A stretch of 64,000 nucleotides of DNA from IMG/VR virus record IMGVR_UViG_3300010938_000951, positions 1-64,000 of that record; one strand, given 5' to 3'. Numbering within the stretch: the stretch's first letter is position 1; each line of letters opens with the position of its first letter. This document shows positions 8,532-60,401 of the stretch, piece by piece. Both the position numbers and the translations under genes were made by a program. The notes under the pieces were generated by a model. That model was not told the DNA's origin. It searched no databases and saw only the letters and a list, made by a program, of their open reading frames with translations.

Positions 8532-8822
8532 ATGAAAGTTTATTTATTAACAATATTTTTGTGTGCCTGCGCTACAGGGGTTTCCGATCCAATTGATGAT
8601 CCTGTAGTAGAAATTCCTGAGAATAAATCTGCTCCTAAACCAGCACCAACAACACCTTCTGCTTCTTCTTGTGAGGTAGATAGTTATTGGTCGGGTAATT
8701 GTTTTATTAAAAAGACTTATTGTTCTAATCAATTAGAACGAATTGATGTAATGTGTGATAGGGGCAGAAAGCTGTTTCCCTGGGAATATATTCCTGATCC
8801 TCCATTTGATGGTACAAAATAA
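8532..8822 (+). CDS. putative lipoprotein
   Basis: hydrophobic N-terminus with LCAC lipobox-like site, Pro-rich linker. Confidence 0.55.
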   Translation: MKVYLLTIFLCACATGVSDPIDDPVVEIPENKSAPKPAPTTPSASSCEVDSYWSGNCFIKKTYCSNQLERIDVMCDRGRKLFPWEYIPDPPFDGTK

Positions 8823-10441
8823 TGTCCTCAGAAGAAAACCTAATTCAAGTTCGCAAGGATAAGCATCAAGAAATTAATAGCGGCACTTATCCATTAGCCA
8901 GCGATCCGGCAACATTGCCATTTATCACTCATACTAATATTGAGCATGTTCGTCGTATGATTGATCTATTGCGAAATAATGGCAAGTTAGTTACTTCTGT
9001 ATCACCATCTGAATTGGGGGATACTGATAAGTACATCATCAGAGGCCGCATTGCGGCTTTGCGTAAGTCAGGAGCAATTACGTTCATTCGAGTGACTGAT
9101 GCTTCAGGGTCTATACAAGTTATTGTAAGTAAGTCGGCTTTTGATAGCTATGAAAAGCTCAAGCTGCTTGATCTAGGAGACATTGTAGAAATTGGTGGTC
9201 GCGCCTGCCAATCTAAGACTGGCGAAGATTCTTTGCTAGCTTTTACTGTGCGCGTTCTAACCAAGGCACATCGTCCACCACCTGAAAAGTTTGCAGGCAT
9301 TGCAGATCAAGAGCTTAAGTATCGTAAGAGATATCTTGATTTAATGTCTTCAGAAGAGAGTCGCGCTAGGTTTACTGTCCGCGCCTATGCTCTTCGAGCC
9401 ATTCGTGAATTTATGGAGTCTCATACTTTCCTAGAAGTAGAAACTCCTACGCTTGGCGCGATTGCAAGTGGTGCCAACGCTAAGCCATTCATTACGCATC
9501 ACAATGCTTTGGATATGGATATGCGATTGAGAATTGCTCCCGAGCTTTATCTCAAGAGGTTGCTTGTTGGTGGTCTTGATAGAGTGTACGAGATTGGTCG
9601 CAACTATCGTAATGAAGGTATTGATACACGCCACAATCCAGAATTCACTATGATGGAGAGTTATCAAGCATACGGAAATTTCCAACAGCTTGTTAATTTT
9701 GCAAAGCAACTACTACAACATGTAGTATCTTATCTATCTAATAATCTTCCTCCAAGTGCTGCTCCCTTCTATAAGCGGTGGTTGGATGAGGCCCCATATG
9801 AATTTTATCATTGCGTAGATATCAGTATGGAGCAGGCTGCTCTTAACGCTTTAGAGAAGATGGATATGAGAGCAGATGAAGAGTTTGCAATCATTGAATT
9901 CAATCATCTAAATGATGAGGCTCCACCAGAAGCAGTCAAGCGTCGTACAAGCGGAATCAATTGGGTTGCCTTTCACCATTTACTAGGTGAGTGTCAATCC
10001 CGTGGTGAAAGGGTTGCTCTTTGTTTTGAAACGTTTGCCGAACCATTCTTAGTAGATGATTATCGTAATGAATCTGGAAATAAGTCGGTTCCGGTATTCA
10101 TTACTGACTACCCAAAGGATATCTCTCCTTTGGCTAGGGCAAAAGATTCTGATCCATCGATTTGTGATCGATTTGAATTGTTTGTAGATGGTCGAGAATT
10201 GGCAAATGCATTTCAGGAACTAAACGATCCGGAAGAACAAGCTCTTCGTTTTCAGGAACAGTTGGATGCTAACAATAAGGATCCAATGGATTTTGATGCC
10301 GATTATGTAGAGGCATTGGAACATGGTATGCCACCTGCTATTGGATTTGGGATTGGCATTGATAGATTAGTGATGTTACTTACTAATACCACATCTATCA
10401 AGGATGTAATCCTATTTCCAACCTTACGACCGGAGAAGTAA
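8822..10441 (+). CDS. lysS: lysine--tRNA ligase (class II)
   Basis: OB anticodon domain, YRKRYLDL, LRIAPELYLKRL, RNEGID..HNPEFT, ELANAFQELNDP, GMPPAIGFGIGIDRL. Confidence 0.97.
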   Translation: MSSEENLIQVRKDKHQEINSGTYPLASDPATLPFITHTNIEHVRRMIDLLRNNGKLVTSVSPSELGDTDKYIIRGRIAALRKSGAITFIRVTDASGSIQVIVSKSAFDSYEKLKLLDLGDIVEIGGRACQSKTGEDSLLAFTVRVLTKAHRPPPEKFAGIADQELKYRKRYLDLMSSEESRARFTVRAYALRAIREFMESHTFLEVETPTLGAIASGANAKPFITHHNALDMDMRLRIAPELYLKRLLVGGLDRVYEIGRNYRNEGIDTRHNPEFTMMESYQAYGNFQQLVNFAKQLLQHVVSYLSNNLPPSAAPFYKRWLDEAPYEFYHCVDISMEQAALNALEKMDMRADEEFAIIEFNHLNDEAPPEAVKRRTSGINWVAFHHLLGECQSRGERVALCFETFAEPFLVDDYRNESGNKSVPVFITDYPKDISPLARAKDSDPSICDRFELFVDGRELANAFQELNDPEEQALRFQEQLDANNKDPMDFDADYVEALEHGMPPAIGFGIGIDRLVMLLTNTTSIKDVILFPTLRPEK

Positions 10442-28286: not shown

Positions 28287-28864
28287 GAATCTTTATTGTT
28301 GGTTTACCAAAGAGTGGTCGAACGACCGTATCTAAAGCTGTAGCTGAAGCTCACAACTTTGAATACATTGACGCGATGTCATGGGTTCGATCCACCTTTC
28401 GTGAGCGCAAAGAGGACGAGCACCCCCAACAATATGAAGATGAGTATCATCACTATCTTACAAAAAGAATGATGGTGAATCCTTGGTTTATTAGTGATCA
28501 TGTCTATGAAATGATGAAGGTTAGTGGAAAGGATGAAGCTACCTTTATTATTGATGGGATTGCTTCTCCAAAGGATTTTACCACTTTGTTTGATTATCGG
28601 CAAGATATTGTAGTATTTCTTAATAGAACAGATCATGACCCAGAGTCGAGAGATCACGAATCAATTGGTGTTTCAGTTATTCGAGACTATTGTTTCTGGA
28701 TGTCGGCAGCCGGCGTATTAACTAGAGATCGATGGTTAGAATATAACTTTAAAATTCCCGGAGAAGACTCTGATCATATTAAGCCAATGGGTGCACAGAA
28801 TAGCGTATTCATTTGTCGTTCAATTAAGAAAGTAATTTCTCACTTATCAGATAGATTCAAATGA
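28283..28864 (+). CDS. P-loop nucleotide kinase-like protein
   Basis: GLPKSGRTT, FIIDG. Confidence 0.7.
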   Translation: MRIFIVGLPKSGRTTVSKAVAEAHNFEYIDAMSWVRSTFRERKEDEHPQQYEDEYHHYLTKRMMVNPWFISDHVYEMMKVSGKDEATFIIDGIASPKDFTTLFDYRQDIVVFLNRTDHDPESRDHESIGVSVIRDYCFWMSAAGVLTRDRWLEYNFKIPGEDSDHIKPMGAQNSVFICRSIKKVISHLSDRFK

Positions 28865-29817
28865 GTATTACCTTCATTGATTTGTTTGCTGGTGTTGGAG
28901 GATTCAGGGTTGCCCTTGAACAATTAGGGGCAACCTGTGTTTTTTCCTCTGAAATAGACAAGTATGCTTTACAAGTCTATAAAGCAAACTTTAATGAAGA
29001 TGCCTCTGGGGATATCACTAAAATAAAAGAAGAGGATATACCGGCGCATGATGTATTGTGCGCCGGATTTCCTTGCCAAGCTTTTTCTGATTTTGGCAAT
29101 CGAAAAGGGTTTGGCGATCCTAGAGGTACGCTTTTCTTTGAGATTGTTAGGGTTGCCAAGCATCATAAGCCCAAAATTGTACTACTAGAAAATGTGCAAG
29201 GATTAACTTGGCATGACGGTGGTAAAACGTTTAGAACCATTCTTGATAGTCTAGAACAAATAGGATACAAAGTATATTGGAAAGTTTTAGACGCTATCAT
29301 GTTTGATGTGCCACAGCAAAGGAAAAGAATTTTTATTGTTGGTGTACGCAATGACATCGATAAGGAATTCGTCTTTCCAGATGGCAAGTTAACTACTAGA
29401 ACAATGAAAGATATTATTGAAAGTAATGTCGATGCTAATCATTTTCTCGCAGAAGAACGATATGAAAAGGTTTTAAAACAAAAGGCTAATGGAAAATGTC
29501 AGTATAGTCATTTCGTTATTGGGCCTAATGATTATGCACACACTTTACTTACATCTAAATATGAGCACAATTTAGTTGTTGATCATACATCTCCAACGGG
29601 CAAATTCCATAATGTTAAAGCTAAAACGGCGAAAGCTGCTCGAATCAATAAGCAACATGTTCGCCGTTTAACTCCAAAGGAATATAGTAGGCTACAAGGA
29701 TTTCCAGATACGTTCCAAGTGCCAGTATCTAATAAGCAGGCTTATAGATTATTTGGTAATGCAGTAGCTGTTCCAGTAGTAGCCGCAGTATTTGAAGAGA
29801 TTAAAAAAGTATTATGA
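28861..29817 (+). CDS. DNA (cytosine-5)-methyltransferase
   Basis: DLFAGVGG, GFPCQAFS, LENV, QQRKRIF, RLQGFP, FGNAV. Confidence 0.95.
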   Translation: MSITFIDLFAGVGGFRVALEQLGATCVFSSEIDKYALQVYKANFNEDASGDITKIKEEDIPAHDVLCAGFPCQAFSDFGNRKGFGDPRGTLFFEIVRVAKHHKPKIVLLENVQGLTWHDGGKTFRTILDSLEQIGYKVYWKVLDAIMFDVPQQRKRIFIVGVRNDIDKEFVFPDGKLTTRTMKDIIESNVDANHFLAEERYEKVLKQKANGKCQYSHFVIGPNDYAHTLLTSKYEHNLVVDHTSPTGKFHNVKAKTAKAARINKQHVRRLTPKEYSRLQGFPDTFQVPVSNKQAYRLFGNAVAVPVVAAVFEEIKKVL

Positions 29818-41326: not shown

Positions 41327-41403
41327 GGGACAGTAGCTCAGTGTTAGAGCACCGGCCTTTAACTGCCGGGGGTCGCTGGTTCAACTCCATGCCTGTCCCA
41401 CCA
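41327..41403 (+). tRNA. atypical tRNA with 8-nt anticodon loop CTTTAACT (identity undetermined)
   Basis: GGGACAG/CTGTCCC-ACCA; bulged T stem. Confidence 0.65.
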
Positions 41404-41463
41404 AACCGAATGCAAGTAGGATTACATCGGATTAAAAATAATCTTACTAACCTTTCGTCGGTT
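41404..41463 (+). ncRNA. Y-like scaffold RNA 1 (no cargo)
   Basis: AACCGA/TCGGTT and AGTAGGATTA/TAATCTTACT stems; CCGAATG and GGATTACAT motifs. Confidence 0.7.
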
Positions 41464-41951: not shown

Positions 41952-42059
41952 TGACGAATGCCCGAAAGGGTTTACATTGTATGCGAAACAATCCGATGGA
42001 GTTCGATTCTCCTTTAAGGCTGGTGCCAGGTAAAACAACTCTTTCATTATTAGTCGTCA
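41952..42059 (+). ncRNA. Y-like scaffold RNA 2 (anticodon arm GCG plus T arm)
   Basis: TGACGA/TCGTCA, GAAAGGGTT/AACTCTTTC; ATTGT-ATGCGAA-ACAAT; GGAG-TTCGATT-CTCC. Confidence 0.75.
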
Positions 42060-42185: not shown

Positions 42186-42321
42186 ACATACCGAATGAGC
42201 TTAAGAGCTACTTAGTCCTAAGGTAGGCAGTCCGCTTACCTGACAATGAATGTAGCTACCTTAAAACAACCGTTATAGTTAGGCTCTAAAGGAATTGTGA
42301 CAAACATTTTTGTCGGTATGT
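42186..42321 (+). ncRNA. Y-like scaffold RNA 3 (divergent)
   Basis: ACATACCGA/TCGGTATGT with CCGAATG and TTTGTCGG; lacks GGATTACAT. Confidence 0.55.
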
Positions 42322-42326
42322 TTTAT

Positions 42327-42403
42327 CAGGGAATGATGTTTAATGGCTAGCATCCTACCTTCGGAGAGTAGAAGTCCCGGTTCGAATCCGGGTTCCCTGA
42401 CCA
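42327..42403 (+). tRNA. tRNA-Pro(CGG)
   Basis: CAGGGAA/TTCCCTG-ACCA, loop TTCGGAG. Confidence 0.85.
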
Positions 42404-42536
42404 TCAGCAAATGCCTGTAGGGATTACATTGCATTTGGAGCACGAGGAGAAGGTCCGATTCCTTCCGGCCCGACCATATCGGGACGAGGTGTTATGGCAG
42501 CACGCGTAAAAATAGTCTCTCAATTCTTGTTGCTGA
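42404..42536 (+). ncRNA. Y-like scaffold RNA 4 (circularly permuted Pro-type tRNA)
   Basis: TCAGCAA/TTGCTGA scaffold; order anticodon, T arm, CGGCCCG-ACCA, CGGGACG, D arm. Confidence 0.8.
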
Positions 42537-42815
42537 ATATCTTCGCATTAGTGTAATAGCTAGTGCGAGGACCATGAGGTCACTCAACTGAAACCTCATC
42601 CATCTAAACGGTCGTCCATTATCGGTTAGAGGAAAATGTAAAGTGGACGTAGCCACAAGGTTCCCAGCGATCGAATGGCTACATTATATTGTTTGAAACT
42701 ATCACTGGGGGCGTAATCGGTTGCGCTTGATATTCCGATGACTAATGGGAGTGAAGATAGTTCCATTGCAGCCCGCAGCTATCACGATATAGTAACTCAG
42801 CGGGATGCGTTTTAT

Positions 42816-42889
42816 TCCGAGGTCGTTCAAAGGCAGGACGGGTCGCTGTTAACGACTCTATGTTGGTTCGATTCCAGCCCTCGGAGCCA
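42816..42889 (+). tRNA. tRNA-Asn(GTT)
   Basis: cloverleaf, loop CTGTTAA. Confidence 0.92.
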
Positions 42890-42892
42890 TAT

Positions 42893-42979
42893 TCTGCGGT
42901 AGCCTAATGGTAAGGCAGGCGGCTGTTAACCGCCCGGTGGTAAAACACTTTCTAGGTTCGAGTCCTAGCTGCAGAGCCA
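42893..42979 (+). tRNA. tRNA-Asn(GTT) with long variable arm
   Basis: loop CTGTTAA; extra arm GGTG-GTAAAA-CACT. Confidence 0.85.
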
Positions 42980-42987
42980 AATAATAC

Positions 42988-43342
42988 GGGGACTGATTAG
43001 ACTGGAATGATCCGTATTAGGTGTTGCGTTTGGTCAGTTCTGCGCAACGACAGGAGTTGTCACCGGAACTTTAACCCGGCCAATCTTCTGAGATGAATGC
43101 GGTAAGGACTACATTACTAATAGCGATCCGCAAGGACAACCCACTCCTTTACAGTACACAAGAGCGGTAGAAAATGCAAACTGAGTACCTGACAAACTTG
43201 ATAACCAGTAAAGCTTCAAGTGTAGGCGGTGAACTACTAAAATTTGCTGCGGACCTTATCGATATCCATAACAGGACTCTTTAAGCAAACCCGCTGTCTT
43301 TACTACCTCTTGTATTGAAATACAAGTTCTTGTCATCAATCT
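42988..43342 (+). ncRNA. unknown ~350-nt structured RNA
   Basis: no ORF; long-range pairings GACAGGAGTTGT/ACAAGTTCTTGTC and ACAAGAG(C)GGTAG/CTACCTCTTGT. Confidence 0.5.
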
Positions 43343-43344
43343 AT

Positions 43345-43419
43345 TCCGCTCTAGTGTAATTAGCACGACGATCCTTTTTCGGGTCGGGGGTCATGGTTCG
43401 AGTCCATGGGGCGGAGCCA
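43345..43419 (+). tRNA. atypical tRNA (T-rich anticodon loop, identity undetermined)
   Basis: TCCGCTC/GGGCGGA-GCCA; arm CGATC-CTTTTTCG-GGTCG. Confidence 0.65.
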
Positions 43420-44132: not shown

Positions 44133-44207
44133 GGTCCCGTCGTTCAATGGTTAGGACAGCACCTTGTCACGGTGCATACGAGGGTTCGATTCCCTTCGGG
44201 ACCGCCA
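44133..44207 (+). tRNA. tRNA-Asp(GTC)
   Basis: cloverleaf, loop TTGTCAC. Confidence 0.92.
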
Positions 44208-44216
44208 GCATATAAT

Positions 44217-44291
44217 GCCTCCGTACGCATCTGGTGAAGCGGGGTGATTGTCAATCATCTGAGGGCGGTTCGATTCCGCTCGGGGGCGCCA
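44217..44291 (+). tRNA. tRNA-Asp(GTC)
   Basis: cloverleaf, loop TTGTCAA. Confidence 0.85.
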
Positions 44292-44362
44292 AGCCAAATG
44301 CCTTGATAGGATTACATTGAACTGTTAATTCAAACCTATATCTTATCTAATTTTTGTTGGCT
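44292..44362 (+). ncRNA. Y-like scaffold RNA 5 (isolated Asn anticodon stem-loop)
   Basis: AGCCAA/TTGGCT, GATAGGAT/ATCTTATC; cargo TTGAA-CTGTTAA-TTCAA. Confidence 0.8.
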
Positions 44363-44557: not shown

Positions 44558-44702
44558 GACAGAATGCCCCGAAGGAATACATAGAACAGCAATTGAATGA
44601 AAATCAATAGATTGTAGGTGCGAATCCTACCTCTCCCACCAATAATAAGATATATGGGAGGGAAGCTAAATAAAACAAACTTCTTTCAAATCTTTGTCTG
44701 TC
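44558..44702 (+). ncRNA. Y-like scaffold RNA 6 (circularly permuted tRNA-Phe)
   Basis: GACAGA/TCTGTC; ATTGA-ATGAAAA-TCAAT, T arm, CTCTCCC-ACCA, linker, GGGAGGG. Confidence 0.8.
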
Positions 44703-44705
44703 AAT

Positions 44706-44781
44706 GGAGCTTGAGCAAGTGTGGTCATTGCATCGGTCTGAAAAGCCGACAAATCCGGTTCGATCCCGGAAGGCTCCACCA
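44706..44781 (+). tRNA. tRNA-Phe(GAA)
   Basis: loop CTGAAAA, CCA. Confidence 0.85.
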
Positions 44782-44790
44782 ACTACCAAT

Positions 44791-44865
44791 GGTCCTGTAG
44801 CTCAGTGGTAGAGCGCTTGCCTGAAGAGCAGGGCGTCGGGGGTTCAATTCCCTCCGGGACCACCA
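44791..44865 (+). tRNA. tRNA-Phe(GAA)
   Basis: loop CTGAAGA, CCA. Confidence 0.92.
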
Positions 44866-45219
44866 ATGAGAATTGTTCAGAAGCCTTGGGGCCATGAAGA
44901 AATCTGGGCCGAAACTGACAGTTATGTTGGTAAAATCCTAGTAATTAATCCTGGTCACAAACTTTCTCGACAATATCATAATTTCAAAGAAGAAACTTTT
45001 AGAGTACTAGAAGGTATTCTTTATCTTGAAATTGGCAATCCTGGTGATATAGATTTTGCTACTTATACTTTATATGAAGGAAATTCTTTTCATTGCCCGC
45101 CAAAAACAATTCATAGAATGATTTGTTCTACTGGCAATATTCAGGCAGTTAAAGTACTAGAAGTATCGACCAATCATTTGGATGATGTAGTAAGACTAGA
45201 AGATGACTATAAAAGATAA
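44866..45219 (+). CDS. cupin (mannose-6-phosphate isomerase C-terminal-like)
   Basis: KPWGHE, LSRQYH..KEET, IHR, DDVVRLEDDY. Confidence 0.85.
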   Translation: MRIVQKPWGHEEIWAETDSYVGKILVINPGHKLSRQYHNFKEETFRVLEGILYLEIGNPGDIDFATYTLYEGNSFHCPPKTIHRMICSTGNIQAVKVLEVSTNHLDDVVRLEDDYKR

Positions 45220-45394
45220 AATAGTAGAGTTAGAAATTGAAAGACTTTCTTTATTAGAAGTAGTAAGGCAATTTACAATACATGATTGCGATGCAAGAAT
45301 GTGGTGTGAACTAAATGAATTCTTAATAAAGATTGAAGAAAGAGCAGAAGAAATAAATCGTGCCATAGCTCAGTTGGTTAGAGCGCATGTCTGA
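45203..45394 (+). CDS. hypothetical protein overlapping tRNA-Ile
   Basis: short ORF. Confidence 0.4.
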   Translation: MTIKDKIVELEIERLSLLEVVRQFTIHDCDARMWCELNEFLIKIEERAEEINRAIAQLVRAHV

Positions 45395-45435
45395 TACACA
45401 TGAGGTCGCAGGTTCGACTCCCGCTGGCACGACCA
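45359..45435 (+). tRNA. tRNA-Ile(GAT)
   Basis: loop CTGATAC, CCA. Confidence 0.92.
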
Positions 45436-45444
45436 AGATAACAT

Positions 45445-45519
45445 GGGATGTTAGTTCAACGGTGAGAACGGAAGTCCGATAAACTTCAGACAATGGTTCA
45501 ACTCCATTACATCCTACCA
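45445..45519 (+). tRNA. tRNA-Ile(GAT), C33 variant
   Basis: GAAGT-CCGATAA-ACTTC, CCA. Confidence 0.8.
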
Positions 45520-45520
45520 C

Positions 45521-45660
45521 TGAAACAAATGCTCGCAGAGGATTACATCGCATATCCAGCGGGTTACGTGAGTGCGAATCTCACTCTCAGCTCATTATGC
45601 TGAGATCGTCTAGCAGTCTAGGACACCTAAAAAATAGTCTTCTCAATTCTTGTTGTTTCA
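45521..45660 (+). ncRNA. Y-like scaffold RNA 7 (circularly permuted Gly-type tRNA)
   Basis: TGAAACAA/TTGTTTCA; CGC-ATATCCA-GCG, T arm, TCTCAGC/GCTGAGA, D arm. Confidence 0.8.
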
Positions 45661-45667
45661 CAATTAT

Positions 45668-45863
45668 GCCTCCTATCATGGCTGGAAACTGATAGCGATA
45701 CCACCAGGCGGTCCCAGAGGGATGCAGCAGGGGAAGTACAAGAGTATCAAACAGAAGGGACGCCTTCTAGCCTGCTCACATGGTTGGAAACTGTGACGCG
45801 GTCTTGGTCGCGATAGACCAAGTAGTAAAACCGCAAGCCTGCCCACATGGTCGGAAACTGTGG
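45668..45863 (+). repeat. three copies of a hairpin with conserved core CATGGYYGGAAACTG
   Basis: copies at 45668, 45770 and 45837 with co-varying stems. Confidence 0.75.
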
Positions 45864-45866
45864 AAA

Positions 45867-45943
45867 GAATCGTCTAGCTCAATGGTAGAGCTACGTCACT
45901 AGTGACGACGTGGATCTGGGTTCGAATCCCAGGATGATTCCCA
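45867..45943 (+). tRNA. His-like tRNA (G-1:C73) with 9-nt anticodon loop
   Basis: GAATCGTC/GATGATTC-CCA; ACGTC-ACTAGTGAC-GACGT. Confidence 0.7.
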
Positions 45944-45945
45944 GC

Positions 45946-46097
45946 GAAGCAAATGCCCCGAAGGTTTACATTTGAGAAACTGTATTATCGCAAGATAGTC
46001 GTGGGTTCGAATCCCACATCACCGCAAGGTGATTGGCTGAGTGGTCTAAAGCGACAGTGCCGCAAGGCATGCTAACTTTCAAATTTTTTGTTGCTTC
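45946..46097 (+). ncRNA. Y-like scaffold RNA 8 (YrlA-like, permuted class II tRNA)
   Basis: GAAGCAA/TTGCTTC; variable arm, GTGGG-TTCGAAT-CCCAC, acceptor ATCACC-GCAA-GGTGAT, D arm. Confidence 0.85.
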
Positions 46098-46098
46098 A

Positions 46099-46228
46099 TC
46101 TCCCGCTAGTTTAAAACGAAACACCTGTTATAGAGGACGTATACTTCAATCTATGAGGGGTTAGTAGTCCAGAAGAATACCTTCCAGTGAGGAAGGAGAT
46201 GCGAGTGCAAGTCTCGCAAGGGAGACCA
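46099..46228 (+). ncRNA. tRNA-like RNA with ~55-nt insert between D and anticodon arms
   Basis: TCTCCC/GGGAGA-CCA, CCTTC-CAGTGAG-GAAGG, GCGAG-TGCAAGT-CTCGC. Confidence 0.65.
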
Positions 46229-46232
46229 ATTT

Positions 46233-46559
46233 ATGGAAAAGAAAATTCCAACTATGAAGGATCTCAAAGAAGGTCCGCCATTACTCTGTCCAATTTGTGA
46301 CAGACCAAATTATTTTCCATCCGACCATCATATGGTACCAAAGTCTAGGGGCGGTAAAACTACCGAAACTATTTGTGAAGATTGCCATAAAGCAATTCAT
46401 GCGCATTTCACCAATAAAGAATTAGAAGAAACGTATCATACGCCAGAAGCTTTGCTATCTCATGAGGGGTTTGCAAAACAGATTAAATTCCTTTCTAAAC
46501 AGGATCCTGGTGGCCGAACCAAAACGAAAAAGAATAAAGATCGTTTGAGGCGAGAATGA
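46233..46559 (+). CDS. small HNH nuclease-like protein
   Basis: CPIC..HHMVPKSRGG..CEDCHKAIH. Confidence 0.8.
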   Translation: MEKKIPTMKDLKEGPPLLCPICDRPNYFPSDHHMVPKSRGGKTTETICEDCHKAIHAHFTNKELEETYHTPEALLSHEGFAKQIKFLSKQDPGGRTKTKKNKDRLRRE

Positions 46560-53063: not shown

Positions 53064-53137
53064 TCTCCGATCGTCTAATGGTAGGACGGGTCGCTCTGAA
53101 CGATCAAATCGAGGTTCGAATCCTCAGCGGAGAACCA
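53064..53137 (+). tRNA. tRNA-Gln(CTG)
   Basis: loop CTCTGAA, ACCA. Confidence 0.82.
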
Positions 53138-53297
53138 GCAACAAATGCCAGCTAGGATTACATAGCTCGCAACTATTTTCCCCGCCAGCCCGAGAGGGCA
53201 AATAAACTTTTATTTTTTATGTTACTAACACGGGGAAATGTTCAAGTCGGTCTGAAAAACCGATAAGGAACTCTTCTTGGCACCTTTAGTTGTTGCT
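53137..53297 (+). ncRNA. Y-like scaffold RNA 9 (two anticodon-like stem-loops)
   Basis: AGCAACAA/TTGTTGCT, GGATTACAT; ATAG-CTCGCAA-CTAT and TCGGT-CTGAAAA-ACCGA. Confidence 0.7.
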
Positions 53298-53303
53298 AAA
53301 TAT

Positions 53304-53404
53304 AGCAGATTGGAGCAGCGGTAGCTCGCCAGGTTCACAATGGGGCTGATGCCCTATAAGGATACCCTGGAGGTCGTGTGGTTCGATTCCCTCATCTGCA
53401 ACCA
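53304..53404 (+). tRNA. initiator-type tRNA-Met with 25-nt insert in the anticodon
   Basis: 1:72 mismatch, TGGAGCAG..GGTAGCTCG D arm; CCAGG-TTCA[25 nt]TAC-CCTGG. Confidence 0.8.
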
Positions 53405-57830: not shown

Positions 57831-58169
57831 GTGAAAGTTATGAGCTTACCTTGGTCACGAGATATGCAATTAGATCCTGGCACATTTGGAGGGTCTCCAG
57901 CATGTCATGTATTAGTTGATATGATGAACAAAAATGTGATTCCTGTTCAGGAAAAACATCGAGTTCTATCATTCATTAGCGGTACTATTTTGCATTTCAA
58001 GGCCATCTCTGCCATCAAAGAAAGAGGTATAAGGGCACGGGTTATGGTGCTTTTGAAAAATGATCTGTTTTCCAGAATAGATCAAATGCCATATCCAGCT
58101 CATTTCAACTCTTATCTGAAGAACGTAGTAAATCACCACTTCAGGCGATACTTAAAAGAAGTAGTCTAG
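57831..58169 (+). CDS. hypothetical protein
   Basis: ORF whose end overlaps RNase P helix P1. Confidence 0.5.
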   Translation: MKVMSLPWSRDMQLDPGTFGGSPACHVLVDMMNKNVIPVQEKHRVLSFISGTILHFKAISAIKERGIRARVMVLLKNDLFSRIDQMPYPAHFNSYLKNVVNHHFRRYLKEVV

Positions 58170-58488
58170 ACAATCGCTCTGCAAGGAGAGGAAAGTCGGA
58201 GCTACATAGGACAGTCTGCTGGCTAACGGCCAGGCGTAGTAATACGACGGAAAGTGCAACAGAAAATAAACCGCCCGCAAGGGTAAGGGTGAAATGGTGA
58301 GGTAAGAGCTTACCGCATGTTTGGCGACAAATATGGCAAGGCAAACCCCAGATGTAGCAAGCTAAACAGAGAGTGACTTGTCCGGTCAATACTCTCGGGT
58401 TAGTGCTGGAGCCGTCAAGTAATTGTCGGCCAAGATTAATGATTGTCTCGATTTATAGACAGAACTCCGCTTATAGGGCTACTTCTTT
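58155..58488 (+). ncRNA. rnpB: RNase P RNA (bacterial type A)
   Basis: P1 AAGAAGTAGTC/GGCTACTTCTT; GAGGAAAGTCGGAGC, GGAAAGTGCAACAGAAA, GGGTGAAA..GGTAAGAGC, GGCAAACCCC, ACAGAACTCCGCTTA with compensatory P4. Confidence 0.95.
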
Positions 58489-58510
58489 TAAGTTCTTTTA
58501 AGGAATTATT

Positions 58511-59040: not shown

Positions 59041-59733
59041 ATGGCAGATAAAGTTACCACCGTTAGCGCAAAAGGTTGCGTTGTAACAGATTTTGATACG
59101 GCTACATTTGCACTCTCATTTAATGAGTTTGCTCCTAAAGCCAAAGACGCAAAGCTGAAGCTAAAGAAAGGTGCAGCTAAGATTACAGCGGCCCTTGATG
59201 ATCTCAAGAAACGTGGGTTGGAGTTTTTAACCAACAACTATCGCACTAATATTACAGTGCAACCAAATTATGTTTATGACCGTTCGTCCGGCCAAAACAG
59301 AATGGAAGGACAGAAGGCAACTTACTCTGTAACGTTCCAAACTCCTACACTAGAAATGGTTAGTGAAGCATACGATCTACTTTCTGAATTGGAAGTGAAT
59401 GAACTTTCAATTAATTCTCCTGCTTATTCTGTCAGGTCCGAAGCGCAATTTAAGCAACAAGCATTGGAAGATGCTTGGAAGGTAGCTCAAGTTTTGTTTG
59501 CTAATCAGTGCAAGGTTCTTGGGTTTGATGAAACTAAATTCTCTGTTGATAGCTGGCAGGTTAATTATAGTGGCCATGACCATGGTGGATTTGCTAAGGG
59601 TCGTAGCTATTCAAACTCTGTGCTAGCGGCATCAGCTTCGGCTGATTATGGTGATGAAGCCATTGAACTAAATGCTGGCCGTGCTATCATTGAAGTAGTT
59701 CTGACTGTCGATTACGTTCGTACCGGATCATGA
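59041..59733 (+). CDS. SIMPL (DUF541) domain protein
   Basis: VTTVSAKG...D.A, ITVQPNY.Y, QQALEDA pattern. Confidence 0.7.
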   Translation: MADKVTTVSAKGCVVTDFDTATFALSFNEFAPKAKDAKLKLKKGAAKITAALDDLKKRGLEFLTNNYRTNITVQPNYVYDRSSGQNRMEGQKATYSVTFQTPTLEMVSEAYDLLSELEVNELSINSPAYSVRSEAQFKQQALEDAWKVAQVLFANQCKVLGFDETKFSVDSWQVNYSGHDHGGFAKGRSYSNSVLAASASADYGDEAIELNAGRAIIEVVLTVDYVRTGS

Positions 59734-60401
59734 AAATTAAGCTAGCCTATCCTAAAATTCCTGATACTTTAGACTGTCCACTCAAGCAATGTATTGCTTT
59801 TGAAAAATTGGATGGAACTAATTTGCATTGGGTTTGGAATAGGGAAAAAGGCTGGCATGCTTTTGGTACTCGCCGAGATAGATTTAATCTAGATGAACAA
59901 GGAATTGCTTCTTTCAACCAAGCACATCCCGGACTGGAGGAAGCAATTTCCTTGTTTAGAAAATCGTATGAGCATCTCGCTGAGTATCCACTTAAACATA
60001 AATATGGTCCAATATCAGAATCCACGGGTGACGTAATTCTATTTACAGAGTTCCTTGGAGATAAATCTTTTGCTGGTTCTCACCAAAAAGGCGACCCCAA
60101 AAGATTAGTATTATTTGATGTAATGACTGATAAAGGAATAACTCCACCAGATCAGTTTGTGATTGATTTTGGACAGTTTGATGATATTCCGGGATATTAT
60201 ATTCCACAAATTGTTTTTAGTGGAAAGTTTTCAGGACAATTATTTGTAGATGTTAGGAAAAACAAGTTCAAAGTAAACGAGGGCGTGGTTGTCAAAGGTA
60301 TGTTTGCCGGGCAAGTTTACATGGCCAAGATTAAGACGACTGACTATTTAGAGCGCCTAAAGAAAGAATTTAAAAACGATTGGAAAAATTATTGGGAATG
60401 A
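59730..60401 (+). CDS. RNA ligase (Rnl2-like adenylyltransferase domain)
   Basis: YPKI, EKLDGTN, TEFLG, LFDV, EGVVVK, AKIKT. Confidence 0.85.
   Translation: MKIKLAYPKIPDTLDCPLKQCIAFEKLDGTNLHWVWNREKGWHAFGTRRDRFNLDEQGIASFNQAHPGLEEAISLFRKSYEHLAEYPLKHKYGPISESTGDVILFTEFLGDKSFAGSHQKGDPKRLVLFDVMTDKGITPPDQFVIDFGQFDDIPGYYIPQIVFSGKFSGQLFVDVRKNKFKVNEGVVVKGMFAGQVYMAKIKTTDYLERLKKEFKNDWKNYWE

Follow-up and report, generated by a model that had tools for sequence, protein, structure and literature searches.

Y RNAs and Ro60 are conserved from bacteria to humans. In the YrlA group of bacterial Y RNAs, the T stem-loop comes before the D stem-loop in the 5'-3' direction, a loop closes the acceptor stem, and the stem leading to the Ro-binding site replaces the anticodon stem (PMC4201824; bioRxiv 10.1101/312249), and the YrlA motif GNCGAAN0-1G (CGAA) is the proposed Ro60 contact (PMC4201824). 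YrlA genes adjoin transfer RNAs (tRNAs) in some bacteria, and the authors of these studies compared YrlA with circularly permuted pre-tRNAs and proposed an origin from dimeric tRNA transcripts; the YrlA of M. smegmatis, which has an acceptor stem of 7 base pairs (bp), is cut by RNase P and receives CCA (PMC4201824; bioRxiv 10.1101/312249). Phages also encode Ro60 and Y-like RNAs, and a ribonucleoprotein (RNP) with the host PNPase is known (PMC12135203). Here, a stretch of 64,000 nucleotides (nt), the first 64 kb of the 266.9-kb IMG/VR contig IMGVR_UViG_3300010938_000951 and referred to below as the window, was analysed around an element at 45521-45660 (+). With a probability of roughly 0.8, this element is a YrlA-type Y RNA-like non-coding RNA (ncRNA) gene, one of eight to ten paralogues in a phage tRNA array. 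A preliminary description had read it as the second of two permuted tRNA genes, of Gly type, which shared with a Pro-type element at 42404 both a break between tRNA positions 28 and 29 and an anticodon shifted by one nucleotide.

The likeness to YrlA (RF02553; Chen et al. 2014, PMC4201824; 6CU1, bioRxiv 10.1101/312249) lies in a closing stem that carries YUAY and a motif of CGAA/AAUGC type, in the module order of T arm, closed acceptor-like stem and D arm, and in the genetic linkage to Ro60/Rsr. There are also differences: YrlA is present in one or two copies beside rsr, whereas here eight to ten paralogues per genome are spread across the tRNA array, 6-20 kb from rsr; N73-CCA is encoded in the acceptor loop of most tRNA-like copies, whereas Salmonella YrlA is without a CCA end; the junction bears a hairpin of the size of an anticodon arm, in contrast to YrlA, which 'lacks the anticodon loop'; G or C occupies position 55; the D loop of the 45521 copy is without GG; and stem-only minimal copies occur. 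Four features are new: the presence of multiple copies within a tRNA array, a CCA that is encoded, a hairpin in the place of an anticodon arm, and forms that consist of the stem only. Yrl1 and Yrl2 of Thermus phage phiLo, with phiRo60 (PMC12135203; 9KOP, 9L5Y), likewise combine a phage Ro60 with Y-like RNAs in which the 5' and 3' ends form a stem and which carry a motif of CGAA type, but these two RNAs lie directly upstream of the gene and outside a tRNA-array context, and a tRNA-like module is undescribed for them in PMC12135203. Yrn1 of D. radiodurans, compared here by description only, is an Rsr-bound Y RNA whose structure allows a T arm and an 'anticodon arm' (5-bp stem, 6-nt loop) to be drawn, although its arm order differs and its origin is, according to the authors, independent (PMC4201824).

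Architecture of the element

Positions 45521 and 45660 are the outer ends of an 8-bp closing helix, helix A, in which TGAAACAA (45521-45528) pairs with TTGTTTCA (45653-45660) and which starts 1 nt past the CCA of the tRNA-Ile at 45445-45519; this and all other parts of the element are on the + strand. An internal loop, CAAAUGC//UUCUUGU, separates helix A from helix B. On its 5' side, the CAAAUGC motif (45526-45532) is the presumed counterpart of the YrlA GNCGAAN0-1G/CGAA motif, the Rfam YrlA consensus CgaAUGC aligning at this point, and the AAUGC within it is identical in every copy of the scaffold described below; the 3' side, TCAATTCTTG (45643-45652), carries a conserved YUUGU that corresponds to the YrlA consensus cUuGu. 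Helix B is formed by GAGGATTA (45538-45545) and TAGTCTTC (45635-45642), and its 5' strand runs into UUAC (45543-45546), the equivalent of the YrlA YUAY, which leads into the tRNA-like module and for which every copy has UUAC, CUAC or AUAC. Seen from the tRNA-like part, the flanks consist of the 8-bp helix B with the asymmetric loops ACAU and UAAAAAA, followed by the second internal loop and helix A.

The tRNA-like module opens with the hairpin CGC-ATATCCA-GCG (45549-45561), formerly taken for an anticodon arm, whose stem can be extended by U45548.G45562. A GG (45562-45563) with the potential to form 2 bp with CC (45626-45627) is a remnant of the YrlA 'anticodon-stem' helix that closes the tRNA-like junction. 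There follow a T arm, GTGAG-TGCGAAT-CTCAC (45568-45584), with G for U55; a closed 7-bp acceptor-like stem, TCTCAGC/GCTGAGA (45585-45605), with T at N73 (TCTCAGC-T, 45585-45592), the loop CATTAT and the 3' strand at 45599-45605; and a D arm, GTCT-AGCAGTCTA-GGAC (45608-45624), 3' of which stand A-CC and then TAAAAAA. Of the elbow nucleotides conserved in YrlA (6CU1: U54-A58, U55, C56, G18 G19 and a UA linker that precedes the D stem), U54, C56 and A58 are kept in the T loop, UGCGAAU, the D loop AGCAGUCUA is without GG and the linker is UC; in the sister copy at 42404, the T loop is UCCGAUU and the D loop contains GG. The minimum free energy (MFE) fold of 45521-45660 alone recovered all of the helices (-37.2 kcal/mol, z = -2.25).

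All of the strings listed in the preliminary description are present where it placed them. When the halves of the tRNA-like part were rejoined in silico at 28|29, ARAGORN returned a cloverleaf at a relaxed threshold, the only one at which the 45521 copy is called, with AUC (45521) and UUG (42404) as the standard-frame anticodons; it is literally true, as had been remarked, that TCC and TGG stand one position too far 3' in their loops. The rejoined 42404 copy has 48-49 identities in 71 positions with the tRNA-Pro genes of the window and 49 with an Asp tRNA, Pro being only marginally the closest; the tRNA set of the window includes no tRNA-Gly as a counterpart for the 45521 copy.

A repeated and covarying scaffold

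The 45521 copy is homologous to the 42404 element, as had been recognised, and the near-identity of their 3' scaffolds is confirmed (TCAATTCTTGTTG is exact at both 42520 and 45643, and the 5' scaffold AAATGC..GGATTACAT is also common to both). Rather than the second of two, however, it is one of at least eight scaffold copies in the window. The string GGATTACAT occurs five times on the + strand of the window, each time a few nt past a tRNA, with 0.72 occurrences expected on both strands. The common frame consists of helix A, which differs from copy to copy yet is compensated in each, (A/G)AAUGC, helix B ending in UUAC-AU, an insert that varies from 5 nt to ~200 nt, helix B', a pyrimidine-rich stretch ending in UUGU, and helix A'. 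Within helix B, the 45521 and 42404 copies differ by a compensatory exchange, GA/TC versus AG/CT.

A covariance model, R1, was built on seven minimal copies; with filters off it left the long-insert copies unscored, and a second model, R2, was rebuilt on 29 aligned hits to solve this. The 45521 copy is matched by R2 with 52 bits (E = 2.8e-10) and by R1 with 27 bits (E = 3e-4), and R2 identified eight copies in the window at E <= 6e-7, all within 12 kb and starting at 41404, 41952, 42405, 44292, 44558, 45523, 45947 and 53139. A first scan of IMG/VR with AATGC-N4-8-GGATTACAT returned 118 loci, of which nearly all were due to chance and only L032, L080 and L085 were true; the remaining chance loci were reused as a negative control, and R2 gave zero matches in these 843 kb of unrelated viral decoy loci with a chance 5' motif.

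The copies share the closing stem and differ in the module that it carries. The copies at 41404-41463 (+; R1 75 bits, R2 62 bits), which consists of the closing stem only, and at 44292-44362 (+; R1 62 bits, R2 65 bits), which adds a 5-bp/7-nt hairpin (loop CTGTTAA), are minimal and keep the closing stem without a tRNA part. A 5-bp/7-nt hairpin (loop ATGCGAA) and a T-arm-like hairpin, without acceptor or D arm, are present at 41952-42059 (+; R2 57.5 bits), and the hairpin stems of this paralogue covary among its relatives. The copy at 44558-44702 (+; R2 41 bits, E = 1.4e-7) combines a hairpin, ATTGA-ATGAAAA-TCAAT, with a T arm (TGCGAAT) and an acceptor stem with A-CCA, and is without a D arm. 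The 42404 element (42404-42536, +; R2 47 bits) has a tRNA-like module with A73-CCA-UAU in the acceptor loop, and the paralogue nearest to canonical YrlA (45946-46097, +; R2 42 bits) has a 5-bp helix, a V hairpin, a T arm, a GNRA-closed acceptor stem and a D arm. At 53137-53297 (+; R2 38.5 bits, E = 6e-7) the same closing stem carries another apical module. A probable ninth copy with a ~200-nt insert (43091-43338, +) reached 18.5 bits with R2 (E = 0.056) and shows GATGAATGC..GGACTACAT..TTCTTGTCATC by eye, and a possible tenth (42188-42320) was also recognised by eye. In a relative of the window, L193:14629-15113 holds four tandem stem-only copies with a 142-nt period, each preceded by an identical sequence; these are a recent local amplification of the minimal element.

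Among 27 distinct copies, helix A is 98.8% paired, with six of its six modelled pairs changed on both sides; in helix B, six of ten modelled pairs have changed on both sides, a G.U is conserved in 22 of the 27 copies and one G-C is invariant. The scaffold as a whole is 89.4% paired in these copies, as against 67.8% in shuffles, and its covariation score of 0.63, as against 0.21, was equalled by none of 500 shuffles. The signal is lost when the 3' partner is slid.

The tRNA-like module in homologues

Seven tRNA-like copies (the 45521 copy, its orthologue in L123, the 42404 copy and four relatives of the latter) were aligned, and RNAalifold recovered three stems: the acceptor stem, with compensatory changes in all seven of its pairs; the T stem, in which three of five pairs show such changes; and a 4-bp D stem with some covariation. 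Orthologues of the 45521 copy are found in L123, L190 and L196-L199, the last four having been obtained by scanning metagenomes with GGATTACAT and the T arm as anchors. Across six orthologous contigs, the CGC/GCG stem, the GG..CC pair, the V loop UUAC and the T and D arms are constant, and the acceptor stem has been rewritten with full compensation (TCTCAGC, ATTCGGC, CTTCGGC, CCTCGGC). The proposed 'Gly body' is upheld by G1-C72 and C2-G71, which all orthologues keep, but not by N73, which is U or A; the 'Pro body' of the 42404 copy is not kept, the acceptor stems of its relatives all being different.

The hairpin loop, in contrast, is the least conserved part of the orthologues, reading ATATCCA, AATCCA (6 nt, in three orthologues) or CTACTAA, and the hairpin is missing altogether from the four relatives of the 42404 copy, where TCAAAAA, TCATTAGGAGAA and TCATTATAAGAA are found; the TGC-ATTTGGA-GCA of the 42404 copy in the window is only a few substitutions away from TCATTAGGAGAA. 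This variation speaks against the idea that loops shifted by one nucleotide had been selected. The contention that the elements are not products of random decay is supported for the structure, by the pairing of helices A and B (89% vs 68%) and the compensatory changes in seven of seven acceptor pairs, and unsupported for the loops. An alignment of homologues, which had been put forward as a check of the break and of the loop, gives a similarly divided answer: the junction is conserved, because it is part of the architecture of the RNA, and the shifted loop is not.

Nor does the common 28/29 break point to a shared permutation mechanism, since the paralogues attach the tRNA-like part in different ways. 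In the copies at 41952, 44558, L195:17602 and L080, an intact 4-5-bp/7-nt hairpin is followed immediately by a V loop of 4-5 nt and the T arm, whereas the copies at 45946 and in the Myxococcus phage Mx1 have a 4-5-bp helix without a hairpin. In the hairpin-type paralogues, the AU of UUACAU often forms the first pairs of the hairpin; CG..CG is kept in the 42404 group, and the Mx1 equivalent is 4 bp, CUCG/CGAG. Hairpins with 7-nt loops occupy the junction in 11 of 31 distinct copies, many of them mutual orthologues and as such non-independent, as against ~10% in shuffles. Some of their loops resemble real anticodon loops, namely CUACGAA (L080), CUGUUAA (44292) and AUGAAAA (44558).

Acceptor loop and tRNA junctions

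Nine of the 11 tRNA-like copies in which a 7-bp acceptor stem is read through have A-CCA immediately 3' of the acceptor strand, and among orthologues of the 45521 copy, A- or T-CCA-TAT follows the acceptor stem in three of the five contigs outside the window, with U-CCA in L197 and L199 and U-CUUAU in L196 and L198. At any loop length, from 3 to ~90 nt, the acceptor loop ends in (U)AU before acceptor position +1. An identical CCA-UAU junction is present between neighbouring tRNA genes of the array (42889/42893 and 44445/44449), and this sharing of CCA-UAU between Y-like acceptor loops and tRNA junctions would fit the dimeric-tRNA origin model. Given a 7-bp stem and a loop that is built like a tRNA-tRNA junction (N73, mostly CCA, and a spacer ending in UAU), the acceptor loop of the CCA-type copies is probably opened by RNase P. 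The copies usually begin 0-2 nt past a tRNA CCA, and four of them end 2-6 nt before the next tRNA. The window itself is in none of the public RNA runs; relatives of the element are present in rhizosphere and sludge metatranscriptome contigs, a presence that is proof of neither transcription nor ends.

A further observation concerns the tRNA junctions themselves. Dissimilar isoacceptor tRNA genes stand side by side as Asn/Asn, Asp/Asp, Phe/Phe and Ile/Ile pairs (42816-42979, 44133-44291, 44706-44865 and 45359-45519), with spacers of 3-10 nt that end in UAU, AAU or CAU.

Comparison with RNA families

Rfam YrlA aligns with 42404-42539 from end to end (17.2 bits), in the order stem, CgaAUGC, helix, CUAc, T arm, closed acceptor stem, D arm, helix, cUuGu and stem. 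It matches the T/acceptor/D core of the 45946 copy (45996-46053) with 26.3 bits (E = 0.0027), a stem-only copy in L121 with 28 bits and a copy in L122 with 24 bits, and Rfam YrlB matches a stem-only copy in L192 with 27 bits. The YrlA GNCGAAN0-1G motif is exact in some paralogues, as GACGAAUG at 41952 and GCCGAAUG in L080 and Mx1.

Beyond Y RNA-like families and weak tRNA-clan models, no other Rfam family scores on these elements. The ribozyme families (HDV-like theta, hammerhead, twister and others) gave no match at E <= 10 over 45500-46250 and 42380-43000. A two-piece (permuted) tmRNA finds no support, the tmRNA_permuted model reaching 10.8 bits on the sister 42404 copy and nothing on the 45521 copy, whose 140 nt are too short for a tag open reading frame (ORF). 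A permuted group I intron or self-splicing or self-cleaving flanks, considered as the exon-like part ends in U before AAAAA, were likewise rejected: the flanks are only ~60 nt, have no ribozyme or intron match in Rfam and pair into a conserved rod.

Linkage to Rsr

The presumed protein partner, a Ro60/Rsr orthologue (33424-35115, +; Pfam vWA_Ro60 9e-15, TROVE 4e-10), is encoded on the same strand as the element and 10.4 kb upstream of it. It matches the phiLo Ro60 (9KOP, 1.4e-15), D. radiodurans Rsr (2NVO, 2.8e-13) and Ro60 (9NEN) over nearly its full length. Both rsr and the elements are present in all close relatives (L189-L195). In L032, a 178-kb contig that was reached by the DNA motif alone, an Rsr homologue (49.7% identity) is preceded by three copies, at upstream distances of 110-440 nt, with zero tRNAs within 11 kb; this is the canonical position of a bacterial Y RNA gene. 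The best cultured match of the Rsr is that of Mx1 (52% identical), and in this phage a single interval between two tRNAs (record positions ~45170-45293) is matched both by R2 (38 bits, E = 8.5e-7) and by Rfam YrlA (32 bits, E = 0.0017).

A second R2 match in Mx1 (L187:8554-8655, OR576727 ~45522-45623; 36 bits, E = 2.8e-6) overlaps the coding sequence of the 'hypothetical protein' WNM70101.1 (L187:8556-8678), an annotation that is probably a misread RNA gene; Mx1 also has a tmRNA at L187:9678-10055. In the window, a 558-amino-acid ORF without a Pfam match (35152-36828, +) directly follows rsr and is a candidate partner of the Rsr RNP. Streptomyces phage Tribute (L200) and Gordonia phage Trax (L201) have a Ro-like gene within or beside a tRNA cluster, and linkage of Ro to tRNA clusters seems general in phages. 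In Trax, a YrlA-like RNA lies just upstream of the Ro gene (Rfam YrlA, 44 bits). This actinophage YrlA is missed by R2, and both R2 and Rfam YrlA are blank in Tribute; the link of the present elements to canonical YrlA consequently rests on the Rfam alignments, Mx1, L032 and the linkage to rsr.

Genome setting

The source genome is a jumbo phage of ~267 kb. Neither near nor distant BLAST matched the region to any of 50,697 GenBank phages, which thus include no close relative. The long ORFs of the window are on the + strand throughout, the GC content is ~0.40, and ARAGORN identified 31 tRNA genes, mostly between 41.2 and 53.4 kb. A complete bacterial type-A RNase P RNA (58158-58489, +; Rfam RF00010, 279.9 bits, E = 2.3e-90) sits within the phage tRNA region; such a gene is uncommon in phages and bears on the processing of the array. 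Other genes encode a class II (Asp/Lys/Asn-type) aminoacyl-tRNA synthetase (8822-10441), a C5 DNA methyltransferase (28861-29817), a microbial PARG (36920-37780) and an RNA ligase (59730-60401), and there is a weak 2H-phosphoesterase match. The synthetase, PARG, ligase and methyltransferase, together with NUDIX and cytidylyltransferase-like genes, suggest functions in translation, RNA repair and NAD/ADP-ribose countermeasures, and the presence near the array of the ligase, the weak 2H-phosphoesterase match, the synthetase and PARG fits a role in RNA repair or RNA turnover during infection.

The array has further unusual members. Two tRNA-like genes (41327-41403 and 43345-43419, +) have 8-nt anticodon loops according to ARAGORN, with the four-base 'anticodons' ttaa and tttt. 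Directly 3' of the Y-like copy at 53137, a tRNA with a ~25-nt insert beside the anticodon (53304-53401, +) is matched by Rfam tRNA with 39.8 bits over 98 nt and was not called by ARAGORN. The ~200-nt spacer 3' of the 45521 element (45661-45867, +) is 85% identical in L123 and has three hairpins with the loop CAUGGNUGGAAACUG, one stem of which has changed from CCAC/GUGG to CUAC/GUAG; it has no Rfam match and an MFE z-score of only -1.1, and may be another ncRNA.

Discussion

Judged from its sequence and that of its homologues, the element at 45521-45660 appears to be a Y RNA of YrlA type that has diverged and scores below threshold, and not a decoding tRNA in rearranged form. The covarying structure, the homology among the copies, the position in the tRNA array, the co-occurrence with rsr and the resemblance to YrlA and YrlB carry this identification. 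Several observations nevertheless weigh against it. Every copy scores below the Rfam YrlA gathering score of 69 bits, although the Trax RNA beside its Ro gene also reaches only 44 bits, and on 45521-45660 itself Rfam YrlA gives no match even at E <= 10. The 5' motif of the 45521 copy is ACAAAUG and not GNCGAANG, with G replaced by A and the partner C by U. G55 in the T loop and a D loop without GG mean that the canonical elbow contacts conserved in YrlA may not form, and the copy in the window has U-CAU-UAU where its orthologues have CCA. The distance of 10.4 kb to rsr exceeds the 4 kb typical of bacterial YrlA.

How the element may be processed, bind Rsr, engage an effector and act in the biology of the phage is inferred. 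The Y-like RNA would be co-transcribed with the tRNAs, and trimming of the upstream tRNA at its CCA would free the 5' end of the Y RNA; in copies that abut a downstream tRNA, the 3' end would be freed by RNase P. Helix A, the CAAAUGC//YUUGU loop and helix B with its conserved G.U make up the closing stem, which is the predicted docking site for the ring of the phage Rsr, and the apical tRNA mimic, comprising the T arm, 7-bp acceptor stem, D arm and hairpin, would serve as an effector module that tethers Rsr to a tRNA-binding partner. By analogy with known systems, in which this partner is PNPase, the product may be a RYPER-like RNA-degradation or RNA-repair particle. Once opened by RNase P at the acceptor loop, the RNA would consist of two pieces and have a free 3' end, which has been reported for the YrlA of M. 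smegmatis, and the RNase P RNA at 58158-58489 is a candidate enzyme both for this step and for the cuts at downstream tRNAs.

A more far-reaching version of this proposal, which is possible if on balance unlikely, is that the genome holds eight to ten modular Ro-tethering RNAs that arose from tRNA-tRNA junctions. Each would comprise the 3' two-thirds of one tRNA, CCA, a UAU spacer and the 5' third of the next tRNA; opening of the N73-CCA-UAU loops by RNase P, perhaps the phage's own, would expose a real CCA end, and the hairpins of anticodon-arm size would imitate particular tRNAs, an idea fed by the enrichment of 7-nt loops, several of them resembling real anticodon loops. The resulting Rsr RNPs could act as decoys for host nucleases or toxins that target tRNAs, or could, during infection, guide Rsr together with an exonuclease and an RNA ligase towards tRNAs that are damaged.

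It is also conceivable, at rather longer odds, that the element is a free-standing tRNA decoy that soaks up tRNA-targeting defence nucleases or toxins of the host, the stem serving stability or processing only and Rsr taking no part. The recurrence of 7-nt anticodon-like loops in L080, 44292 and 44558, their frequency (11 of 31 copies) relative to shuffles, and the large tRNA array beside genes of RNA-repair type, including the ligase, would suit such a role; it is the stem that argues otherwise, as it resembles YrlA/YrlB and travels with rsr, and in addition the loops are unconserved among orthologues and the minimal copies are without a tRNA part. A decoy role could, moreover, be compatible with a YrlA-type identity, the decoy then acting as an Rsr RNP. 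Less probable still is a spacer or processing cassette of the tRNA operon, or a remnant of a tRNA junction, whose sole function is to guide cuts at adjoining tRNAs by RNase P, RNase E or RNase Z. While the copies are wedged against tRNA ends and the acceptor loop equals a tRNA-tRNA junction, the L032 scaffold lies directly upstream of rsr without a nearby tRNA, and the conservation of AAUGC, UUACAU and YUUGU exceeds the needs of a spacer helix.

The permuted pre-tRNAs of Cyanidioschyzon merolae and of some archaea share with the element a tRNA 3' part that comes first, a loop-closed acceptor stem and paired ends; their flanks form a bulge-helix-bulge from which cutting and ligation produce a canonical tRNA, whereas the flanks here are a conserved Ro-type stem that is also present without the tRNA part, and the loops are non-canonical and variable. 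A bulge-helix-bulge consists of two 3-nt bulges separated by 4 bp, and the flanks are without this motif: they are a YrlA-type closing stem and not the leader and trailer of a permuted gene. That the element is a genuine circularly permuted tRNA gene, whose precursor would be made circular by way of the paired flanks and reopened in the acceptor loop to yield a tRNA that decodes or has another function, as in C. merolae, is barely tenable, for although the rejoined halves form a cloverleaf at the relaxed ARAGORN threshold and orthologues have the 7-bp acceptor stem, N73 and CCA, the 8-bp helix, internal loops and second helix of the flanks are conserved as a unit in the tRNA-less copies at 41404 and 44292, orthologues have 6-nt loops or receive no ARAGORN call on the rejoined RNA, the hairpin is missing in the 42404 relatives, the T loop is without U55 and the D loop without GG, the phage is of bacterial type with a bacterial RNase P RNA, and no splicing endonuclease was seen among the ORFs scanned.

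If the element is a Y RNA of YrlA type, as is favoured here, elements of this kind can easily be mistaken for small ORFs or for tRNAs that are broken or permuted, which apparently happened in the record of Mx1, a cultured relative that appears to carry the same kind of element. The origin from tRNA junctions, if true, would make the array a living illustration of the dimeric-tRNA model for the origin of Y RNAs. One genome holds a natural series of modules on a constant Ro-type stem, from the stem only, through a hairpin with a T arm, to a full tRNA mimic with or without CCA. Lying within a tRNA operon beside a phage Rsr, an RNase P RNA and an RNA ligase, this series offers a comparative and experimental panel for what the tRNA mimic of a Y RNA recruits.

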